Source: Paramoeba atlantica
Taxonomy: Eukaryota > Protista > Discosea
Assembly: GCA_977017575.1 (NCBI GenBank)
Contig: CDRNVI010000201.1
Location: 37,261 to 101,260 of the forward strand
DNA length: 64,000 bases
Direction: 5' to 3'
The translations under genes and the position numbers were made by a program. Position 1 is the first letter of the stretch, and the number at the start of each line of letters is the position of its first letter. Of this stretch, positions 35,646 to 48,670 are shown one piece after another. Under the pieces are notes generated by a model. The model was not told the origin of the DNA. It saw only the letters and a program-made list of their open reading frames with translations, and did no database searches.

Positions 35646-36259
35646 GTTTGTTCTTTTTTTGGTATTTTTTGGTATTTTTTGGTATTTTTTTGGAGGTTGT
35701 GGTATTTTTTGGTATTTTCCTGTTATTTTTTGGAATTGTTTTGGATTGTTTGGTATTTTTTCAGATTCACAAAAGTTTTCAAATTGGACGGAGATAACTG
35801 GAGATAAGGCTTGGTTTTTGAAAATAACAGGTGTATACCGGTGTAAATACTGGTAAATACTGGTAAATACCTGGCATTTTTTTGTTCATGGCCCTTTTTC
35901 AGTTTTCCTGTTTGGTTTTGAAGTGATAACAGGTGATTGGTGGTTGGTTTGTTTTTTTCGTTCTCTCAGTTTTTTTTTAAAGAAAAAGCAAAAGTGAGGT
36001 TTCAAGTTGAGTATTCATTTGTTTTTGTAGGGATAAAGGATATGGGTGGGAAAAAAAGAGTCCAAAAAATCAAGAGGCAAAGAAACAGTAAAATTGGAAG
36101 AATCGAAAAGGTTTTGCTCCCAAAAGTCCAGAGGAACTAAAATTAAATAAAAAAGAACAAAAAGACCCCCCCAACCAACCAAAACCCTTCTTTTTCTTTT
36201 TTTTGTTTTTTTGTTTTGGGTCTTGTTTTTTGTTTTGTTTTGTTTTTTGTTTTTTCTTG

Positions 36260-39200
36260 ATGAATTTGAATGAGAGAAATATGATGGAAGAGGAGGTGGT
36301 GGTTGGGGAAAGAGAAAGGACTGAGAGAAGAGAAGAAGAGAGATTGAGAAACGAAGAAAAAGAAGAAGAAAAAGAAGAAGAAAAAGAAAAAGAAGAAGAA
36401 AAAGAAAAAGAAAAAAAAGAAGAAGAAAAAGAAAAAGAAAAAGAAAAAGAAGAAGAAAATGAAAAAGAAGAAGAAGAAAAAGAAGAAGAAGAAGAAGAAG
36501 AGAAAGTGAGAAAAGAGTTGAAAGAAAACTCATTCGAGGTTTCTGAATTTTCAATCTTTCTTTTCTTTCTTTCTTTTTTCTTTTTCTTTCTTCTCTCTCT
36601 TTTCTTTCTTTTTTTGTTTCTTTTCTTTCCTTTTTCTTCTTTTTTACTCTTCTTCTTTTTCTCTCTTTCTCTCCTTTCTTTTCTCCCTTTTCTTTGTTTT
36701 TTCGCTCTATTTCTATGTTCTGAGACAATTCTCTATTTTAATAATTCAATTCAATATTTTTCTTCCAATTTTTTTTTATTTTGATTTCAAAAAAAGGAAT
36801 TATTCGAAATTGCTTTGATGGAACAAGATTGGATTCGACTTGAGACACTCTTTGAGATGACAAAAAAACTTGATTATCCCAATGTTCTCTTTTCTTTTTT
36901 TTTTCTCTTTTTTTCTTTTTCTTTTCTTTTCTTTTCCTTTTGAGTGATATTTTTAAATTTTTTTTTGGGAGCAATTTTAACTCTTTTTTCTCAAAAAAAA
37001 AACAAAACAAAAAAACAAAAATAGTTTGGAATAAGAGATCTCCATATTGCTTCTTTGAAAGGAGATGAAAAGAAAGTTGAATTATTATTGAAAGAAGGAG
37101 CAAATATCAATGCTTTTGAACAGGTTTTTTTTTTATTTTTATTTTTATTTTTAAATTTTTTGCTTTTCTTTCAAATCCAAAAATTGATCTCTTTTAATTT
37201 TATTATTTCTTTAGATTTATGGAAGAACTCCTCTTTTTATTGCTGCTCAAAATGGAGATGAACAAATTGTTCAAATTTTATTGGAAAAAGGAAACCCAAA
37301 TGTTGATCTTCCAGATCAGGTTCTTTTGTTGATTCTTTCTTTTTCTTTTTCTTTTCAGTTTCTCATTTTTCTATTTTTTTTGAATGTAAAGGATGGAAGA
37401 ACTCCTCTTTTTATTGCTGCTCAAAATGGGAATGAACAAGTTGTTCAAATTTTATTGGAAAAAGGAAAACCAAATGTTGATCTTCCAAATGTGGTTCTTC
37501 TTTTTCTTTTTCTTTTTTTTTTTTTTTCAGTTTCTCATTTTTCTTTTGTTTTTTAATGTAAAGAATGGAACAACTCCTCTTTTTATTGCTGCTCAAAATG
37601 GACATGAACAAATTGTTCAACTTTTATTGGAAAAAGGAAAACCAAATGTTGATCTTGCAAATAAGGTTCTTTTGTTGTTTGTTTTCTTTTTCTTTTTCTT
37701 TTTTTTTCAGTTTCTCACTTTTTCTATATTTTTTTTAATGTAAAGACTGGAATAACTCCTCTTTATATTGCTGCTCAAAAAGGAGATGAACAAATTGTTC
37801 AAATTTTATTGGAAAAAGGAAAACCAAATGTTGATCTTCCAGATCAAGTTCTTTTGTTATTTGTTTCTTTTTCTTTTCAGTTTCTCATTTTTCTATTTTT
37901 TTAATATAAAGGATGGAGTAACTCCTCTTTATGTTGCTGCTCAAAAAGGAGATGAACAAATTGTTCAAATTTTATTGGAAAAAGGAAACCCAAATGTTGA
38001 TCTTCCAACTTTGGTTCTTTTGTTGATTCTTTCTTTTTCTTCTTTTTCTTCTTTTTTCATTTTTCTATTTTTTTTTAATGTGAAGGATGGAAGAACTCCT
38101 CTTTATATTGCTGTTCAAAATGGACACGAACAAATTGTTCAAATTTTATTGGAAAAAGGAAAACCAAATGTTGATCTTCCAGATAAGGTTCTTTTGTTGA
38201 TTGTTTCTTTTTCTTTTTTTTATCAGTTTCTCATTTTTCTCTTTTTTTTTAAAATGTAAAGTATGGAACAACTCCTCTTTTTATTGCTGCTGAAAATGGA
38301 CATGAACAAATTGTTCAAATTTTATTGGAAAAAGGAAAACCAAATGTTGATCTTCCAGATCAGGTTCTTTTGTTGATTCTTTTTCTTTTTCTTTTTCTTT
38401 TATCAGTTTCTCATTTTTCTATTTTTTTAATGTAAAGGATGGAGCAACTCCTCTTTTTATGGCTGCTCAAAATGGACATGAACAAATTGTTCAAATATTA
38501 TTGGAAAAAGGAGAACCAAATGTTGATCTTCCAGATGAGGTTCTTTTGTTTCTTTTTCTTTTTTTTTCTTTTTCAGTTTCTCATTTTTCTATTTTTTTTT
38601 AATGTAAAGTATGGAGAAACTCCTCTTTTTGTTGCTGCTCAACAAGGACATGAACAAATTGTTCAAATTTTATTGGAAAAAGAAGAACCAAATGTTGATC
38701 TTGCAAATCTGGTTCTTTTGTTGATTGTTTTCTTTTTCTTTTTCTTTTCAGTTTCTCATTTTTCGATTTTTTTTTAAAATGTAAAGGATGAAAGAACTCC
38801 TCTTTTTATGGCTGCTGAAAATGGACATGAACAAATTGTTCAAATTTTATTGGAAAAAGGAAAACCAAATGTTGATCTTCCAGATCAGGTTCTTTTGTTG
38901 ATTCTTTTTCTTTTTCTTTTTCTTTTATCAGTTTCTCATTTTTCTATTTTTTTTTAAAATGTAAAGTATGGAACAACTCCTCTTTGGATTGCTGCTCAAA
39001 ATGGACATGAACAAATTGTTCAAATTTTATTGGAAAAAGAAGAACCAAATGTTGATCTTCCAAATGAGGTTCTTTTGTTTCTTTTTCTTTTTTTTTCTTT
39101 TTCAGTTTCTCATTTTTCTATTTTTTTTTAATGTAAAGTATGGAAGAACTCCTCTTTTTATTGCTGCTGAAGAAGGACAAGAACAAATTGTTCAAATTTT

Positions 39201-41057
39201 ATTGGAAAAAGGAAACCCAAATGTTGATCTTCCAGATAAGGTTATTTTGTTGATTGTTTCTTTTTCTTTTCTTTTTCTTTTTTTTTCTTTTCTTTTCAGT
39301 TTCTCATTTTTCTATTTTTTTTATTTAAAGTATGGAGTAACTCCTCTTTATATTGCTGCTTGTGAAGGACATGAACAAATTGTTCAAATTTTATTGGAAA
39401 AAGGAGAACCAAATGTTGATCTTCCAGATCAGGTTCTTTTGTTGTTTGTTTTCTTTTTCTATTCTTTTTCTTTTCAGTTTCTCATTTTTCTATTTTTTTT
39501 TATGGAAAGGGTGGAAGAACTCCTCTTTTGATGGTTGCTAACAATGGATATGAACAAATTGTTCAAATATTATTGGAAAAAGGAAAAGCAAATGTTGATC
39601 TTCCAAATAAGGTTATTGTGTTATTCATCATCATTTTGAATTTGTTGATTTTGTTTTTCCAATCCCTCCAATGGAAGTGGAGGGGGAGTGGGTGGATATT
39701 GAGTGATATTTGTTTTGTGTTTTCTTTTTGAAGAATTCTTTTCTTTTTTTCAATCTTTTTTCTCAAGGATGGGTGGACCCCTCTTCATGTCGCTGCTTCT
39801 AATGGTTTTGAAGAAATTGTAAAGATTTTGATTGAACATTGTGCCAATGTTAATCTTCAAAACAAAGTTTTTTCATTTTTCTTCATTTTGATTTGTGTAT
39901 TTTTGTTTGTGTGGTGGGGTTCTTAATTTTTTTTTCCTCTCCTCTCTTCTTTTTCTTTTTTTTTTTTTTGCTTTTTTATTTTTCTATTTTTTTTTAATGT
40001 AAAGGATGGAGTAACTCCTCTTTCTATTGCTGCTTGTAATGGACATGAACAAGTTGTTGAAATTTTATTGGAAAAAGGAAAAGCAAATGTTGATCTTCCA
40101 AATAAGGTTATTGTGTTATTTGTTATCATTTTGAATTTGTTGATTTTGTTTTTCCAATCCCTCCAGTGGAAGTGGAGGAGAGGGTGGGTGGATATTGAGT
40201 GATATTTGTTTTGTGTTTTATTTTTTAAAAATTCTTTCTTTTTTTTTGAATCTTTTTTCTCAAGGATGGGTGGACCCCTCTTCATAGAGCTGCTGAGAAT
40301 GGTTTTGAACAAATTGTAAAGATTTTGATTGAACATCGTGCCAATGTTAATCTTCAAAACAAAGTTTTTTCATTTTTTTTTTTTTTCTCCTTTTTTGTTT
40401 CATTTTTGTTTTGTTTTTTCTTCATTTTTGTTTTGTGTTTTTTTGTTATTTGGGTTTTGGGGAATATCTCTTTTGATGTGAGTTGATCAAGGTGTTCTGT
40501 GATCTGTGTTTTTAATCTTCCTTTTTTTTTCTTTTTTGATGTGTTGTTTTTTAATATCATCTTTTTTGTCAAGGGCGGGAGGACCCCTCTTCATGTTGCT
40601 GCTGCGAAAGGTTTTGAACAAATTGTAAAGATTTTTATTGAACATCATGCCAATGTTAATCTTCAAAACAAAGTTTTTTCATTTTTCTGCATTTTGGTTT
40701 GTGTATATTTGTTTGTGGAATATATGTTTGTGGCGGGGTTCTTTTTTTTTTTTTGAACTTCTTTTTCTTTTTTTTTTGGTTAGGATGGGGAGACAGTCTT
40801 TGATGTTGCAAAGAACCACAAAATTGTTGATCTGATCATTCAATTGAAGGTTTGGTTTTTTTTCTCTCTTCTTTTTTTTTGTGAATTTTCTTTTCTCCTT
40901 TTTTTTCTTTTTTTTTTCTTTTTTTTTCTTTTTTTTTGATTGATTTTTTTGTTGAATATTTTATTTGAGTGTGGGAAAAAAGAATATGATCTCATTTTTG
41001 TTTTCTTGGTTGTAGGGACAAACTATAAAACCAGCTCGTGCAAAAAAAGAAAATTAA
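36260..41057 (+). CDS. Ankyrin exon-array gene B: charged first exon, 2 N-cap exons, 15 type-I and 3 type-II repeat exons, C-cap and GQTIKPARAKKEN tail
   Basis: 102-nt phase-0 exons xGxTPLxxAAxxGxEQIVQILLEKGxPNVDLPxx separated by homologous ~70-100-nt GT-AG introns; terminal exon 41016-41057. Confidence 0.9.
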
Positions 41058-41450
41058 ATTTCGAAAGTTCGAAAATAGAATTCCCCAAAAATTGACCTCT
41101 CTATCGGAAATTGCTCCATTCATTTGTGCTATCATCACTCTACTAAGACTTTGGAACCAAACCATAAAGAAGGTGACCAGTTCCAAAACAAGATTGTTGG
41201 GATTGTTCTTGCTGTTAATTGAAAATAATTTTGTTGTGTGGAATCAGCAGATAATAAAATTGTAAATGTAAAAGAAAAAAAAATAAAATAAATAACCTTT
41301 GTGGTGGACACACAAAAGGCTCCTGCAAGATCTGTTTCACCCTAAAATGTAAAAATAAATAATTAAATTTCATAAAAAGAAAAGAGGAAGAAAAGAGGAG
41401 AAAAGAAAACGATGATAAGATCAAAAAAAGCAGAAAAAAATTCAAAGCAG

Positions 41451-42350
41451 TCATGATATTGAATAAATAAATAACGCCTTCATAACCTTCATTCTCCAAC
41501 TGGAGCTATCGAGAAATTCAAGTGCACTATTCTTTTGGTTTTCACAGCAACCTCCTTCTCCTTCTTGATCTTTTCTCTTCTTTTTCTCTTCCTCTGCTGC
41601 TGCTGCTTGTCTCTTCTCCAAATCCTCTGTCTCCACACTCAACTCAACATCAAAGTTGTTCAGAAATGAAATTGCATCTTGGATGTTCTGAAGGCCTTTC
41701 GAGAAACAATTCATTTTATGTTCTAACCCCCGCTTTCTCTGAACTATTTTAGCCCGTCGATTGTCTTTTGAGATTCGACTCAATTATGTTCGAAAAGAAG
41801 CAATCGCCTTGGAATATTTTCTCTCTTGTGTCTGAAGAAAACCAATTCGTCCCTGCAATGCTTTTACAACTCCTTGATGCTGAACCCTTTCTTGGATTTG
41901 GTTTTGCCAAGCCTCCTCACGCTCTTGGAGTAACTTTTTCAACTCATCAATTTGTTGTTGTTGGAGTTCGATCACCCTTTGAAGTTGCTGTTCAGTTGTT
42001 GTGGAGGGGTGAAGAGAAGTGGGGGTGGTGGGAAATTGGTCGAAAGAGCTGGACATCAAGACTCTATGATGAAATTGTTGAAAGCAGGGTTTCAGAGGAC
42101 TGCTTGGGGTGATGGGTGATGGGGGTTTGTTGAAATGACGAGGTCCATGAAAATTAGATTCATGGAAGGAAGGGTTTGGAGTGGAAACCATTGAGGTTGG
42201 TGGTGGTGGAGGAAGGGGGAGTGGTGATGAGAGGTGGGTTCCAACAAGTGGTGGTTGTGATGATACCATCATTGAAGAGCCAAAACAACAATCTCTCGAT
42301 ATTTTTCGTTTTTTCGCTCTTGAACCTTCCAAAGTAAAATCATATTCCAT
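41451..42350 (-). CDS. Pro/Gln-rich coiled-coil, NLS-bearing ORF split by one in-frame TAA (41784-41786); may have further exons to ~41090
   Basis: Track ORFs 41784..42407 and 41451..41783 are in the same frame (…SFRT*LSRISK…); basic clusters AKKRK and KKKRK. Confidence 0.5.
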
Positions 42351-42875
42351 CGTTTGGTTTGGGGTTGTGGGGGGGGAGGGCGTACCAAGACAAAAAGAAA
42401 AACACACACAATAGAGAAAGGGAGAGGGGGGGTGAAAAATTTTGGAGAGATAAGAGAGATGGATAAGAGAAAGGAGAAAAAGAAGAGAAGTTGTCCTTTT
42501 TAGGGTCCTCTTTTATTTTTTTTTAATCGGAAATCCGCTCCTCTGAAAGAGAAGAACAAAAGAAGAACACAATCAAAAAGAAGAAAAGAAAAACAGAATG
42601 AAGAGTGAAAAGAGAGAGAGAGAAAAGTTAAAAGAGGCCAAGGTTTGTTTTTAGATTTTCAATATGGCGGCAGACAGCGGCCTGACCAGCGAAAGAAGAT
42701 TTGAAAAGAAAACCCGAAGCTGCAGAAGAGAAAGAAGGATTTTGGGAAATGGGAGAACGGAAAATTTCCCTTTCTTTTTTTCCTCGAAATTTGGGTTTCT
42801 CAATTTTTTGTGCGGGTTTTTCTTCTTTTTTTTCCTTTGTCTCTCTCTTTCTTGTTTCTCTTTCAATAATTTTAT

Positions 42876-43847
42876 ATGGCGTCATCTTCCTCCTCCTCTT
42901 CCTCTTGTTCTCCATCCTCTTGTTCTCCTCCTTCATCCCCTTGTTCTTCATTGTCATCCTCAACACCAAACCACAACACAAAAGAAGGTGCTTTAGAACC
43001 TCCACCAAAAAAACGACGATTGACACAAAAGAACCAGATTCACAAGTTGTATGTTGAAGTTGAATCACTTGAGATCGTAAAATCTTCGACCCATTTTGGT
43101 CCAAGCTCTGAAAAAGATTATCACACAATCAGAAGAAACACACTTCTCCTTGTGAGGTTAGACAGAAAGGATATTGTCGCAAAAGGGCTGCTCTTGAAGA
43201 ATGTTCTCCCAAAAGACAAAGTGGAGGCTCTCGCAAATCTCTTGTGGAAAAACAAAAATACCAAAGGTTGGTGGGAATCGAAGCTTGATACGAGACGAAG
43301 CCCTTCATCAAATATCCGTAAGAACTATGTTCGAACTGGTTTTTGGCATCAAGTTGGACATGCAACCCCTAAGTATGGACCATTTGAAGCTGGAACAGCA
43401 GGAAAAGATCCTGAGATTCGGGATTGTTTGAATTCCTTCCTTCTGCCATTGGCAGAAATTACCTCACAAAAACTCGCAAAATTTGATCCCTTCATCACAG
43501 AGTTGGTGGCTGGTTTACCCAATTTTCCATTTGGTTCCTTTCACCTTTTTATGTGCACTCGAGGATCTTCTGCATTTCATCGTGATCCGAATGATTATGT
43601 GGCATTTTTATTCCCCATTTTTGTTGAACAGGGAAAGAAAGGGGCGTTAGAAATTGGAAGAGTGTCAAGGGGGTTTTATTGGCAAGTGGGTGACGGAATA
43701 CTATTAAATTCACGTGACTTGGAACATGGGACTCGTAATTATGAAGGAAATGAAGATAATCGAATGATTGGGATATTTTTGATTCAACACCCTTATTTGA
43801 ATGTACATGGGATTGATTTGAAGAAAGAACAATCAAAAAAGAAATAA
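42876..43847 (+). CDS. TET/JBP-family 2-oxoglutarate/Fe(II) dioxygenase (putative DNA-base oxidase), intronless
   Basis: HRDPND (HxD), GDGILLNSRDLEHGT (distal His), NRMIGIFLIQH (2OG-binding Arg, resembling TET RxSLVFYQH); upstream DPF...LPNFPFGSF; NLS PPPKKRR. Confidence 0.75.
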   Translation: MASSSSSSSSCSPSSCSPPSSPCSSLSSSTPNHNTKEGALEPPPKKRRLTQKNQIHKLYVEVESLEIVKSSTHFGPSSEKDYHTIRRNTLLLVRLDRKDIVAKGLLLKNVLPKDKVEALANLLWKNKNTKGWWESKLDTRRSPSSNIRKNYVRTGFWHQVGHATPKYGPFEAGTAGKDPEIRDCLNSFLLPLAEITSQKLAKFDPFITELVAGLPNFPFGSFHLFMCTRGSSAFHRDPNDYVAFLFPIFVEQGKKGALEIGRVSRGFYWQVGDGILLNSRDLEHGTRNYEGNEDNRMIGIFLIQHPYLNVHGIDLKKEQSKKK

Positions 43848-44184
43848 AAAAAAAGGAATTTATCATCATCTTCCCTTTTTTGTAATTAATTGTTTTGTTT
43901 TTGTTTTTGTGTTATTTTATCTTGATAATCCCTTTTTTTTTCCCCTCATCATTTTTCATCATTTTTATTTAATAATGCTTTTGTTAAAAAAGAAATAATA
44001 TTTGAGAATTGGAGGGAAAAAATGATCTTTTAATAAAATTAGGGATTTTTATTCTCTAATAATCAAAAACAATAATTCCTCCACCCCCCAATATCTCCAC
44101 CAGCCTCACCTTTCTCTTTCTCTTTCTCGCATGTGGTATCCAATTCCCCCCATCTCTCACATATCCCCATTTCTCCCCCCTCCT

Positions 44185-44964
44185 TTAATAACGAACAGCA
44201 TTAAATGAGTTAGTTCCTACAACTCGTGCAGAAAATTTCACCATTCCGAACCCTTTTTCAAAAGAGACCACAAGTGGGCATTTGAAAGGAACTTTAACGA
44301 GACAGCAGATTTGCGAGAATCGGACAGATTCGAGAACAATTTTGTTTTTCCCATCGTCTTCACTGTTAAAAGGGAAGTCTTTTCTCCGCCACTTATCAGT
44401 CCCAAATTTTCGATCCAATGTTTCCAAATCTTCCTCATTTGAAATCACTATCTTCTTCCGAGCATCAGTTTCTTTCATTTCTCCCACTCCTTCAAAAAAC
44501 CAATCAAACAAAGGAAGTGGTAATGGAAAAGCTCCTTTGATATCACTTCGATGGTGTTTCCACGACCATTTGAGGCGTTCCTCAAACTTTGGAAGAATTA
44601 AGTAATTGACAAACCAAGAAGGGGGAGCAGATGGCAGCTGCTGGGTGGTTGTTGGGGGTGGAGGAGGAGACAGTGAATGGTCATCTGTTCCAGCCTCCCC
44701 CTTTCGTTCGACTCCTTTGTCTTCTTCACACAAGTCTCCTCCTTGTCGATTCAACATCACGGAGTGGTCAGCGGTGGTGGTGGAGAACACCAAAGCAACA
44801 ATATCAGTGCTGCTCCTTGACAAATGTTCTTCTTCCTCGCTGTTGGTGGTGGTGCTGCATTGTGAGGACGCACGTTTTTTTTTTCTTGAAAAATCAAGAA
44901 CCCAAACATCATCTTCAAACACCTTTTTGACTCTTTTCCTTTTCCCTGGCCCAAACTCTTCCAT
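44185..44964 (-). CDS. Intronless 259-aa hypothetical nuclear protein
   Basis: Normal-composition ORF with ATG; two NLS-like clusters (GKRKRVKK, RKKKR). No family recognised. Confidence 0.55.
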   Translation of the reverse strand: MEEFGPGKRKRVKKVFEDDVWVLDFSRKKKRASSQCSTTTNSEEEEHLSRSSTDIVALVFSTTTADHSVMLNRQGGDLCEEDKGVERKGEAGTDDHSLSPPPPPTTTQQLPSAPPSWFVNYLILPKFEERLKWSWKHHRSDIKGAFPLPLPLFDWFFEGVGEMKETDARKKIVISNEEDLETLDRKFGTDKWRRKDFPFNSEDDGKNKIVLESVRFSQICCLVKVPFKCPLVVSFEKGFGMVKFSARVVGTNSFNAVRY

Positions 44965-45138
44965 TCCAATCGAAAACAGAAAACGTGAAATGCACCAACA
45001 TCACTGCCGCAAGGAAAGTTGAAAAAAGGGACAACAGGGACACCCTGCCACGTCAGCCCCATACAAAAAATTTGTAATGAGGGATTTGAACCCACATTCT
45101 TGTTTTTTGTTGTTTTTTGTTGTTTTATTTTTTGTTTG

Positions 45139-47983
45139 ATGAATTTAAATGAGAGAAATATGATGGAGGAGGAGGTGGGGGAAAGAGGGAGTCCTGAGAG
45201 AAGAGAGGAGGAGGGGAAGAGAAAAGAAGAAGAGGATGAGAAAATGAGAAAAGAGTTGAAAAAATCATTCGAGGTTTGTGAATGCTCTTCTTCTTTTTCT
45301 TTCTCTCTTTTTTTTTCCTTTTTCAATTTTTGGGGGAGAGAGGAGAAGGGGAGAGAGCAGGAGCTGAGAGAGGGGGAGAGAGTTTCATTTGAAGGATTTA
45401 GAGTTTTGAGAAGAGGAAGAGGGGTTTTTCGGGGAAGGTTCAGAGGGAAGAAGAAGAAAGGGAGAGAGAGAGAGGCGTTATTGATGGAGATGAACCAGGG
45501 TGAGTGGGCAGCAAGTGTGGAGTTGATGATGATTGTGATATGTTTTTCTGTCTTTGGGGAAAAGGTCAAGGATGGTTGTGAGGGGGGGGAGGGAGGGAGG
45601 GAGGGAGGGAGGTGGGGAGGTGGGGATTGAAGTGTTTTTTTTTGGGGGGGGTGAGGGGGGATTGAGGGGTCAAAGAGGAAGAGGGAAAGAGAAAATAATT
45701 TGCCCTTTTCCTGACCCTTTCTTTTTTTTTGGAAAAGCCCCTCCCCCCCCTTGTGGTATTTTTCTATTTTTTGAATGTTTATCTTTTTAAACAAAAGGGT
45801 GGAGCAACTCCTCTTTATATTGCTGTTCAACAAGGAGATGAACAAATTATTCAATCTTTATTGGAAAAAGGAAAAACCAATGTTGATCTTGCAACTTTGG
45901 TTCTTTTGTTGATTCTTTCTTTTTCTTCTTTTTCTTCTTTTTTCAGTTTCTCATTTTTCTATTTTTTTGAATGTAAAGGATGGAAGAACTCCTCTTTTTA
46001 TTGCTGCTGAAAATGGAGATGAACAAATTGTTCAAATTTTATTGGAAAAAGGAAAACCAAATGTTGATCTTGCAAATAAGGTTCTTTTGTTGATGTTTCT
46101 TTTTCTTTTCTTTTTTTATCAGTTTCTCATTTTTTGATTTTTTTTTTATGTAAAGAATGGAAGAACTCCTCTTTTTATTGCTGCTTTTGAAGGACATGAA
46201 CAAATTGTTGAAATTTTATTAGAAAAAGGAAAACCAAATGTTGATCTTTCAGATAAGGTTCTTTTGTTTGTTTCTTTTTCTTTTTTTTTCTTTTTCATTT
46301 TCTCATTTTTCTATTTTTTTTTAATGTCAAGGATGAAAGAACTCCTCTTTTTGTTGCTGCTGCACATGGAGATGAACAAATTGTTGAAATTTTATTGGAA
46401 AAAGGAAAACCAAATGTTAATCTTCCAGATGAGGTTATTTTGTTGATTGTTTCTTTTTCTTTTTCTTTTTCTTTTTCTCATTTTTCTATTTTTTTTAATG
46501 TAAAGTATGGAAGAACTCCTCTTTATGTTGCTGCTCAAAATAGACGGAAACAAATTGTTCAAATTTTATTGGAAAAAGGAAAAGCAAATGTTAATCTTCC
46601 AGATCTGGTTCTTTTGTTGATTGTTTTCTTTTTCTTTTTCTTTTCACTTTCTCATTTTTCGATTTTTAATGTAAAGGATGGAAGAACTCCTCTTTTTATG
46701 GCTGCTCAAAAAGGAGATGAACAAATTGTTCAAATTTTATTGGAAAAAGGAAACCCAAATGTTGATCTTCCAGATGAGGTTATTTTGTTTGTTTCTTTTT
46801 CTTTTTTTTTCTTTTTCATTTTCTCATTTTTCGATTTTTTTTTAATGTAAAGGATGGAAGAACTCCTCTTTTTGTTGTTGCTCAAAATGGATGGAAACAA
46901 ATTGTTGAAATTTTATTAGAAAAAGGAAAACCAAATGTTAATCTTCCAGATCAGGTTATTTTGTTGATTGTTTCTTTCTTTTTCTTTTTCTTTTTCTTTT
47001 TTTTTCTTTTCTTTTCAGTTTCTCATTTTTCTATTTTTTTGATTTAAAGTATGGAGCAACTCCTCTTTTTATGGCTGCTCTAAATGGACATGAACAAATT
47101 GTTGAAATTTTATTGGAGAAAGGAGAACCAAATGTTGATCTTGCAGATCAGGTTCTTTTGTTGATTGTTTTCTTTTTCTTTTCTTTTTTTTTTTTTCACT
47201 TTCTCATTTTTCTATTTTTTTTTAATGTAAAGTATGGAAAAACTCCTCTTTTTATGGCTGCTGACAATGGATATGAACAAATTGTTCAACTTTTATTGGA
47301 AAAAGGAAAGGGAAATGTTGACCTTGGAGATGAGGTTATTGTGTTATTCATTATCATTTTGAATTTGTTGATTTTGTTTTTCCAATCCCTCCACTGGAGT
47401 GGAGTAGAGGGTGGGTGGATATTGAGTGATATTTGTTTTGTGTTTTATTTTTTTAAAAATTCTTTTTTTTTAATATCATCTTTTTTCTCAAGGATGGGTG
47501 GACCCCTCTTCATGTTGCTGCTTCTGATGGTTTTGAAGAAATTGTAAAGATTTTGATTGAACATTGTGCCAATGTTAATCTTCAAAACCAAGTTTTTTCA
47601 TTTTTCTTCATTTTGATTTGTGTATTTTTGTTTGTGGAATAAATATTTGTGGTGGGGTTCTTAATTTTTTTCTTTCTGAACTTCTTTTTCTTTTTTTTTG
47701 GTTAGGATGGGGAGACAGTCTTTGATGTTGCAAAGAACCACAAAATTGTTGATCTCATCATCCAATTGAAGGTTTGCTTTTTTTCTCTCTTCTTTTTTTA
47801 ATCCATTTTCCTCTTTTTTTTCTTTCTTTCCCCCTTTTTTTTCCTTTTTTTTCTTTTTTGATTGATTTGTTTGTTGAATAAATATTTTATTTGAGTGGTG
47901 GGAAAAAAGAATGTGATCTCATTTTTGTTTTCTGGTTGTAGGGACAAACTATAAAACCAGCTCATGCAAAAAAAGAAAATTAA
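45139..47983 (+). CDS. Ankyrin exon-array gene C: charged first exon, 9 type-I and 1 type-II repeat exons, C-cap and GQTIKPAHAKKEN tail
   Basis: Repeat exons from 45798 to 47493 with the same intron sequence as gene B; same C-cap exon DGETVFDVAKNHKIVDLIIQLK. Confidence 0.88.
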
Positions 47984-48670
47984 ATTTTGTGAAAGTTTGA
48001 AAATAAAAGAAGAATAAAGTTATGTTTCCTCTCACAAAACCTCCATTTTTATGAAACCTGACAATTTCTCATCAAAACCTGTACCTCTAAAAATTTTTTA
48101 CAAAAGATAATGTCTTTTCTTGTGAGAAGTACAAATGTACAAATAAGTTCCACCAAAACAAAAAAATGAGATTGCAAAAAAACTAAAAGAATTTTCATCA
48201 ATTGATTTTTCAAAATTTATTTAAAAACTGACTATTTCCTAAGTACAGCCTCAACCAGCAATTCAAAAAACAGTCAAATCTTTCTATTTTTTCTCATTAA
48301 ATAAAGTAAATTATTGTAGAATCACCCATGCATATCACTATTTTGGTTCTCTAGAATTGGAAATGGTAATTGGAATTGTGATAATACCAAAAACCATCAT
48401 ATTAATCAAAATTGATAAAATAAATTTTGTACAATTTGGTTGAAGATAATAGTGTTAAAACATTCAAATTCTCAACAAAGAAGAAAGACCAAAATACAAC
48501 TTTCAGAAGTTTAAAGGGAATTCAAAGAAGAAGAAAAGAAAACAAAGGATTTCTAAAGAGAACAACCCAATTGTTTCAATGCAAAACAAAGGCAAAATTT
48601 ATTTAACACCTTAAAAATAGTAAAATGGATCAAAATTAAAATAGATCAAAAACATAAAAGATGTACAATT

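Follow-up and report, generated by a model that had tools for sequence, protein, structure and literature searches.

Enzymes of the TET/JBP superfamily, Fe(II)/2-oxoglutarate (2OG) dioxygenases that act on methylated bases, are to our knowledge the only known route by which methyl marks are removed from DNA oxidatively. Among the described members, NgTet1 of Naegleria gruberi (PDB entries 4LT5, 5CG8 and 5CG9), CcTet of Coprinopsis cinerea (7VPN, 7W5P and 8JKK) and human TET2 (4NM6) offer solved structures for comparison, whereas JBP1 and JBP2 of kinetoplastids hydroxylate thymine. In NgTet1 (Asp234), TET2 (Asn1387) and CMD1 (Asp350), one residue forms a hydrogen bond with N4 of 5-methylcytosine (5mC) and clashes with N6-methyladenine (6mA) (PMC11040006, PMC7854593). 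CcTet, which is active on both 5mC and 6mA, has Gly in place of this N4-contacting Asp, a substitution that underlies its 6mA activity, and Arg at the position that contacts N3, so that His there is not universal among active TETs (PMC11040006). In fungi, TET/JBP genes are also encoded by transposons, with KDZ, hAT, Harbinger, IS3EU, EnSpm, ESTA, Plavaka and Helitron elements as carriers (Kojima 2025, PMC12730594); TET-carrying DNA transposons are reported from three fungal lineages, and neither protists nor Amoebozoa are mentioned (PMC12730594). Here we describe a 323-amino-acid (aa) open reading frame (ORF) from the discosean amoeba Paramoeba atlantica that we assign to this superfamily. It lies in a 64,000-nucleotide stretch of contig CDRNVI010000201.1 (assembly GCA_977017575.1, positions 37,261 to 101,260), which we refer to as the window.

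The window protein resembles NgTet1 in size and organization: both have about 320 aa and a single domain, without a Cys-rich or CXXC module. NgTet1 is also its best structural match and its best sequence match among solved structures, and its HxDxxD motif, distal His and Arg line up with those of the window protein. The two share only about 15% identity, however; Gln304 of the window protein replaces His297, its N terminus is drawn out into a long Ser-rich tail that contains a KKRR cluster, and the Pfam Tet_JBP model does not recognize it. CcTet and TET2 are top Foldseek matches with the same catalytic core; CcTet, however, has Gly at the position of Asp240 of the window protein, and the window protein lacks both the Cys-rich domain of TET2 and its large low-complexity insert. 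With JBP1 and JBP2, which we compare by description only, it has in common the superfamily and the chemistry (that is, hydroxylation of the 5-methyl group of pyrimidines in DNA), but its N4-contacting Asp would argue for cytosine over thymine.

Taking these comparisons together with the evidence below, we consider it likely that the ORF is an intact, divergent TET/JBP dioxygenase, probably nuclear and with 5mC as the likeliest substrate, and that it is encoded by a fixed single-copy host gene and not by a mobile cassette. Such an enzyme would hydroxylate the 5-methyl group of a modified pyrimidine after flipping that base out of the duplex, most likely converting 5mC to 5-hydroxymethylcytosine (5hmC) and perhaps oxidizing it further; the iron triad (H235, D237 and H284), R296 and D240 are all kept. 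Several observations weigh against this assignment. The protein gives no match to Pfam Tet_JBP (PF12851) or to 2OG models even at E ≤ 10, and the His that contacts N3 (NgTet1 H297, TET2 H1904) is replaced by Gln304. No C5 DNA methyltransferase is found with PF00145 or TIGR00675 (searched exon by exon in an intron-dense genome, so that absence is not proven), and the tree that separates the window copy from its sisters comes from a quick search only.

With Pfam Tet_JBP silent on the protein itself, profiles and structure carry the case for family membership. None of eight paralogs from the same genome matches Tet_JBP at E ≤ 10 either; a single-sequence phmmer search of PDB returned nothing, an NCBIfam search nothing useful, and a word-index search of 5.8 billion proteins no match to the 323-aa protein. 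Since neither the word search nor the family scans placed the protein, a core profile built from the own-genome paralogs only (A2) was run through an exhaustive HMMER search of 1.84 billion proteins. With a cut-off of E ≤ 1e-3 it retrieves 144 proteins, of which 54 reach E ≤ 1e-30, and all the matches that were looked up are unnamed metagenomic proteins. Six of these matches (P0088, P0108, P0110, P0114, P0124 and P0135), with library-wide E values from 1.6e-13 (P0088) to 1.9e-4, pass PF12851 at 35.1–47.2 bits (Pfam gathering threshold, 34.9 bits), and closer outside relatives score only 17–19 bits on that model. A profile–profile alignment (hhalign) of A2 with the six Tet_JBP-passing proteins extends over 180 columns at a probability of 99.5% (E 1.1e-22) and brings both HxD and the distal His into correspondence. 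A 63-sequence family profile searched against PDB finds NgTet1 (5cg8 and 4lt5) at E 2.6e-10, again with HxD, distal His and Arg in register; the next families follow at E ≥ 0.003. In the ESM Atlas, 24 of 30 look-alikes fall in the Tet_JBP set, which we count as a lead only. The direct search against Tet_JBP and 2OG profiles that the first-pass annotation had proposed is thus negative for the protein itself and positive by way of the A2-linked proteins.

The predicted structure points the same way. An AlphaFold model computed from 8 sequences (predicted local distance difference test score, pLDDT, 57.8) was superseded by one computed from 75 sequences, which covers residues 55–323 at pLDDT 93.5 and a predicted template modelling score of 0.91. 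When this model is compared with PDB using Foldseek, ranks 1–26 are all TET enzymes (E 1e-10 to 9e-7), with CcTet at 1e-10, TET2 at 1e-9, CMD1 at 3.5e-8 and NgTET1 at 2e-7, followed by ALKBH3 at 3.6e-6. A Foldseek-independent alignment against representatives gives NgTET1 a Z score of 19.3 (210 residues, root-mean-square deviation 2.8 Å), CcTet 18.5 and TET2 17.6, and the same aligner gives lower values to a generic 2OG oxygenase (14.4), CMD1 (13.7), ALKBH3 (13.3) and prolyl hydroxylases (about 12). As modelled, the 323-aa protein is shown to have a TET-type double-stranded β-helix whose similarity to solved TETs exceeds that to the remaining 2OG oxygenases. The TET/JBP identity first proposed from catalytic motifs is therefore supported by profile homology, profile–profile comparison and predicted structure, and the best structural match is neither an AlkB protein nor a prolyl hydroxylase.

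Residue conservation was counted over a 75-member family alignment, some columns of which hold fewer than 75 residues. The motifs on which the earlier assignment was based (HRD, LEHGT and NRMIG-F-QH) are present in the window protein, and their catalytic residues are nearly invariant in the family: the iron ligands H235 and D237 occur in 75/75 members each, the distal ligand H284 in 70/71 and the 2OG-binding R296, which follows at about the 10-residue distance from the distal His that is usual in TET/JBP enzymes, in 69/72. D240, three positions beyond the HxD Asp, is Asp in 73/75 members and Asn in the other 2/75. Position 304, the equivalent of NgTet1 His297, is more variable (His in 48, Gln in 12 and Lys in 4 of the 75-member alignment), and the nearest relative of the window copy, the metagenomic protein P0010, likewise has Gln there. 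Gln304 as the mark of a defective copy was considered and rejected, because Gln is the second commonest residue at that position (12/75). Basic N-terminal clusters are present in all own-genome paralogs, and from such clusters the 323-aa protein is probably nuclear.

The gene lies in a 4-kb spacer between two tandem ankyrin paralogs, B and C, which are built of units of about 175 bp, each consisting of one ankyrin repeat (one exon) and a short intron (Table 1). Both the window (35% GC) and the 45.7-Mb assembly are AT-rich, and the genome is intron-dense. The ankyrin genes align at their 3′ ends (40544–41080 versus 47463–48008, 88% match) and at their 5′ ends (36226–36302 versus 45105–45181, 82% match; family D10), and we delimit the spacer by the points at which this homology ends (41080) and restarts (near 45100), close to the breaks at 41075 and 45090 seen in the first-pass annotation. 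The spacer has no match in the rest of the window and only short low-complexity matches in the rest of the assembly, and is thus single-copy DNA. Its ends carry no terminal inverted repeats (TIRs), target-site duplications (TSDs) or direct terminal repeats other than A/G-rich low complexity, and a Pfam scan of its ORFs found no transposase-like ORF, so that the earlier failure to see a transposase or terminal repeats is upheld beyond low-complexity matches.

The observed/expected (o/e) CpG ratio of the spacer is 0.51, compared with 0.46 for the window overall, 0.55–0.61 for other genic stretches and 0.47–0.58 for a nest of transposable elements (TEs). The spacer had been described as retaining CpGs, which is correct relative to the ankyrin genes; against the window as a whole its value is ordinary. 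A role in counteracting CpG methylation of the TE nest, also suggested earlier, finds no backing, as the raw CpG ratio of the nest equals the window average and no C5 methyltransferase was detected. Separately, nowhere in the window is CpG scarcer than in ankyrin genes B and C (CpG o/e 0.14 and 0.09; GpC o/e 0.62 and 0.56), a depletion far stronger than that of the TE nest.

Table 1 Features of the window and TET-carrying elements elsewhere in the genome. Positions are those of the window unless a contig (C) is given.
Feature	Position	Strand	Basis or description
Ankyrin gene B	36226..41080	+	one repeat per ~175-bp exon–intron unit; alignments of B/C ends
4-kb spacer of unique sequence, flanked by tandem ankyrin genes B and C	41081..45100	.	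single-copy in genome; without terminal repeats
207-aa neighbour ORF	41784-42407 (with extension 41451..42407)	-	contains KKRK; coiled-coil-like
Divergent TET/JBP-family Fe(II)/2OG dioxygenase, intronless, 323 aa (coordinates include stop)	42876..43847	+	ORF, profile homology, predicted structure
KKRR basic cluster, residues 45-48, after Ser-rich low-complexity N terminus; putative nuclear localization signal	43008..43019	+	read from translation
H235-R-D237-P-N-D240: HxD iron ligands and Asp aligned with NgTet1 Asp234	43578..43595	+	family alignment; alignment with NgTet1 HKDNLD
H284, distal iron ligand (LEHGT)	43725..43727	+	family alignment; in register with NgTet1 distal His
R296 (2OG-binding Arg) to Q304	43761..43787	+	within NRMIGIFLIQH; aligned to NgTet1 RIGLVYFAHK
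259-aa neighbour ORF	44185..44964	-	basic clusters including KRKRVKK
Ankyrin gene C, paralog of B	45105..48008	+	alignments of B/C ends
Group c, 3 copies			4,823-bp unit; 34-bp TIRs (33/34), start CGGTACAGGCAGCAAAG; 7-bp TSDs TAGAAAA (C143) and ACTTTAA (C149)
Group-c elements with paired ends, exactly three	C143:392601-397423, C149:570767-575589, C149:405755-409105		genome-wide TIR search
Group d, 3 copies			C137 copy and near-identical C152 twin inside a 9,383-bp interval bounded by inverted CACTTTGGG termini
Group f, 2 copies	C164:41017, C143:39844 (5′ termini)		~95% match over 315 bp to group-d 5′ terminus
Group e, 2 copies			sharp repeat boundaries; adjoin convergent multi-exon gene
Group b, 1 copy	C156		solo single-copy gene
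Window copy, 1 copy			solo single-copy gene

The spacer holds three uninterrupted ORFs, the TET-like gene on the plus strand and two others on the minus strand; the latter carry the basic motifs ascribed to them in the first-pass annotation. The 207-aa ORF belongs to no known family and has no second copy in the genome. It ends at a single in-frame TAA (41784–41786), beyond which the same frame stays open for 110 further codons, and this TAA could be a recent nonsense mutation, a site of read-through or chance. The 259-aa ORF also belongs to no known family (Pfam and further family scans) and has one genomic paralog (C169:26800–27243), 49% identical over residues 115–259 (that is, the C-terminal half), on a contig that carries no TET copy; its ESM Atlas look-alikes, plant B3-domain proteins, are weak (score 0.82, below trust level). 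Neither ORF accompanies any other TET paralog in the genome. With no second copy of one neighbour, and the sole paralog of the other on a TET-free contig, the three ORFs do not form a recurring unit.

Elsewhere in the genome, the divergent TET-like family comprises 12 full-length copies (the window copy and eleven sisters) and one fragment. Identity between the sisters and the window copy ranges from 29 to 38%. The frames, of about 300–370 codons, are fully open except in two group-d copies, which carry one TGA each. Most sister copies are cargo of cut-and-paste DNA transposons, as in the fungal TET transposons; unlike those, however, the window copy itself lies outside any element. The transposon association foreseen in the first-pass annotation thus fails at the spacer and holds for most sister copies. 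Group-c element copies are at least 99% identical, the one at C149:405755–409105 being a 3,351-bp deleted version, and on the strand opposite to the TET gene the unit has a second gene, split by introns, whose CxxH and NNxxExxNxxLK motifs are those of Mutator-like transposases. Four exon pieces of this transposase-like gene, searched singly, gave no Pfam match, and the label Mutator-like refers to the motifs only.

The group-d element on C137 spans approximately 136987–146369 and has CACT termini, making it CACTA-like; the third copy (C149, 5′ terminus C149:582669) matches at its 5′ terminus, its 3′ side being read for 1.5 kb only. Group-f TET proteins form a lineage separate from group d despite the common element start, which suggests cargo exchange or an old divergence inside one CACTA-like family. 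The 3′ sides of the group-f copies and of the group-e copy on C145 were also read for 1.5 kb only, and carriage by the 9.4-kb CACTA-like element accordingly means at least two copies inside the element and three more with its start. Two group-d TET copies (C137:144937–145860 and C152:21098–22021) have the in-frame TGA together with HRT for HGT after the distal His, from which we take it that some transposon-borne copies are decaying. The gene adjoining the group-e copies matches Peptidase_C48/Ulp1 (80.5 bits) and RNase_T (31.4 bits), with a sub-threshold TNP-like RNase H match (20.8 versus 24.6). That the near-identical copies of groups c, d and e are mere haplotigs was rejected, as their flanks diverge sharply at defined ends; for the pairs C137/C152 and C164/C143, whose collinearity extends over 12 kb, either haplotigs or segmental duplication may be the explanation. 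A second, canonical lineage is also present (C3:218187–218660, C30:803409–803882, C39:574702–575160 and C40:275206–275664; Tet_JBP 125–139 bits), its four loci forming two near-identical pairs in open frames of 893–1048 aa. With the 12 divergent copies, these four loci bring the TET/JBP-type genes of the genome to at least 16.

A quick maximum-likelihood search on an alignment of 75 rows, from which short fragments among the 144 matches had been left out, gave a tree in which the window copy groups with the metagenomic proteins P0010 and P0019 (SH-aLRT support 97) and apart from the other own-genome copies, and in which sequences from outside fall between the six own-genome lineages. P0019 has the exact HRDPND and LEHGT motifs, and both relatives keep the motifs of the window copy. 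Judged by sequence, the window copy is an old lineage that has retained its catalytic residues. A search for loci related to it in viral and metagenome contigs gave no match. For the block that contains it, bounding TIRs or TSDs, multiple copies and a transposase all lack support, so that it does not qualify as a TET transposon; the termini of the known TET-carrying elements of the genome are absent from the window, and the spacer is similar in composition to other genic DNA of the window. Models for KDZ (PF18758) and Transposase_21 (PF02992) found no match in the genome, but the controls were likewise silent, so that this negative carries no information. Given that most other copies of the family are transposon cargo, two readings of the solo copies fit best: either the host has retained them, or they are cargo that has long been immobile and whose element has decayed.

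Alternative explanations concern what the protein is and what it acts on. An identity as a generic member of the other 2OG oxygenases (AlkB, prolyl hydroxylase or TauD) has barely any credibility: the 8-sequence model gave generic matches only, an 8-sequence profile weakly matched gamma-butyrobetaine dioxygenase (E 0.09) and a few relatives show short WelO5 matches, but with the deep alignment TETs lead both structure searches (by 3–5 Z units) and the profile searches lead to Tet_JBP, with prolyl 4-hydroxylase appearing only at E 0.22 and no AlkB sequence match. Substrate is the more serious question. The C5 methyltransferase searches that were negative here give matches in 9 of 14 control genomes, which leaves a 5mC substrate without a detected writer and makes thymine or another base the main alternative, and a homolog of MT-A70 adenine methyltransferases is present (C24:82434–82952 and C11:188940–189458). 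A TET/JBP-fold enzyme that acts instead on thymine in DNA (yielding 5-hydroxymethyluracil as JBP enzymes do), on 6mA or on methylated RNA would fit this situation, the replacement of the N3-contacting His by Gln and the 6mA activity of CcTet, a top structural match (PMC11040006). We nevertheless think it unlikely, since the residue at the Asp240 position is one that contacts 5mC through a hydrogen bond to N4 and collides with the N6-methyl group of 6mA (PMC11040006), and since the O4 carbonyl of thymine would be badly matched by an Asp carboxylate. The alignment of D240 with N4-contacting NgTet1 Asp234 favours a cytosine-type substrate. Our preferred reading is a nuclear oxidase of 5-methylpyrimidines that acts on flipped-out bases in DNA; within it 5mC, because of Asp240, is the likeliest substrate, with a chance that we put at close to even.

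Other alternatives concern how the gene came to lie where it does. The first-pass annotation took the spacer and its three ORFs for an acquired or mobile chromatin-modifying cassette, a view that draws on three intronless ORFs in an intron-dense setting, on the lack of homology between the spacer and the flanks of the other ankyrin paralog and on the fact that most sister copies travel as transposon cargo. It now appears improbable: the block is single-copy at the DNA level, is free of TIRs, TSDs and any transposase-like ORF, is of ordinary genic composition and contains an old lineage, the known TET-element termini are missing from the window, and the neighbour ORFs do not recur (a search for further copies with the same neighbours and shared ends found none in the assembly). 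We give a slighter chance still to the view that the window copy is an immobilized relic of transposon cargo, open by chance and with no present function. The family is mostly transposon-borne and at least one sister lineage is decaying (the group-d copies on C137 and C152), but the 323-codon frame of the window copy is open, every invariant family residue is kept at about 30% identity to the sisters, and its outside relatives P0010 and P0019 share the motifs, a pattern that points to long purifying selection.

In summary, a host-resident, catalytically intact TET/JBP dioxygenase is the likely identity of the window ORF, and with it a sizeable branch of this superfamily comes into view that is missed by Pfam and by ordinary sequence search and is recognizable only by chaining profiles and predicting structures. 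Should a 5mC writer be truly absent from this amoeba, the whole of this unannotated branch, with its 144 metagenomic representatives, would act on something other than 5mC made by DNA methyltransferases (thymine, an unusual base or RNA, for example); alternatively, an enzyme that goes unrecognized writes 5mC here. At present we consider this quite doubtful; if true, the solo window copy would be the host-resident member of that system. Because no C5 methyltransferase was detected, the question of substrate is open to direct test. The carriage of TET genes on transposons has so far been described in three fungal lineages (PMC12730594), and the P. atlantica genome provides a natural comparison in which solo fixed copies (that is, those of the window and C156) can be set against copies of the same family that reside on at least two to three different cut-and-paste transposons.

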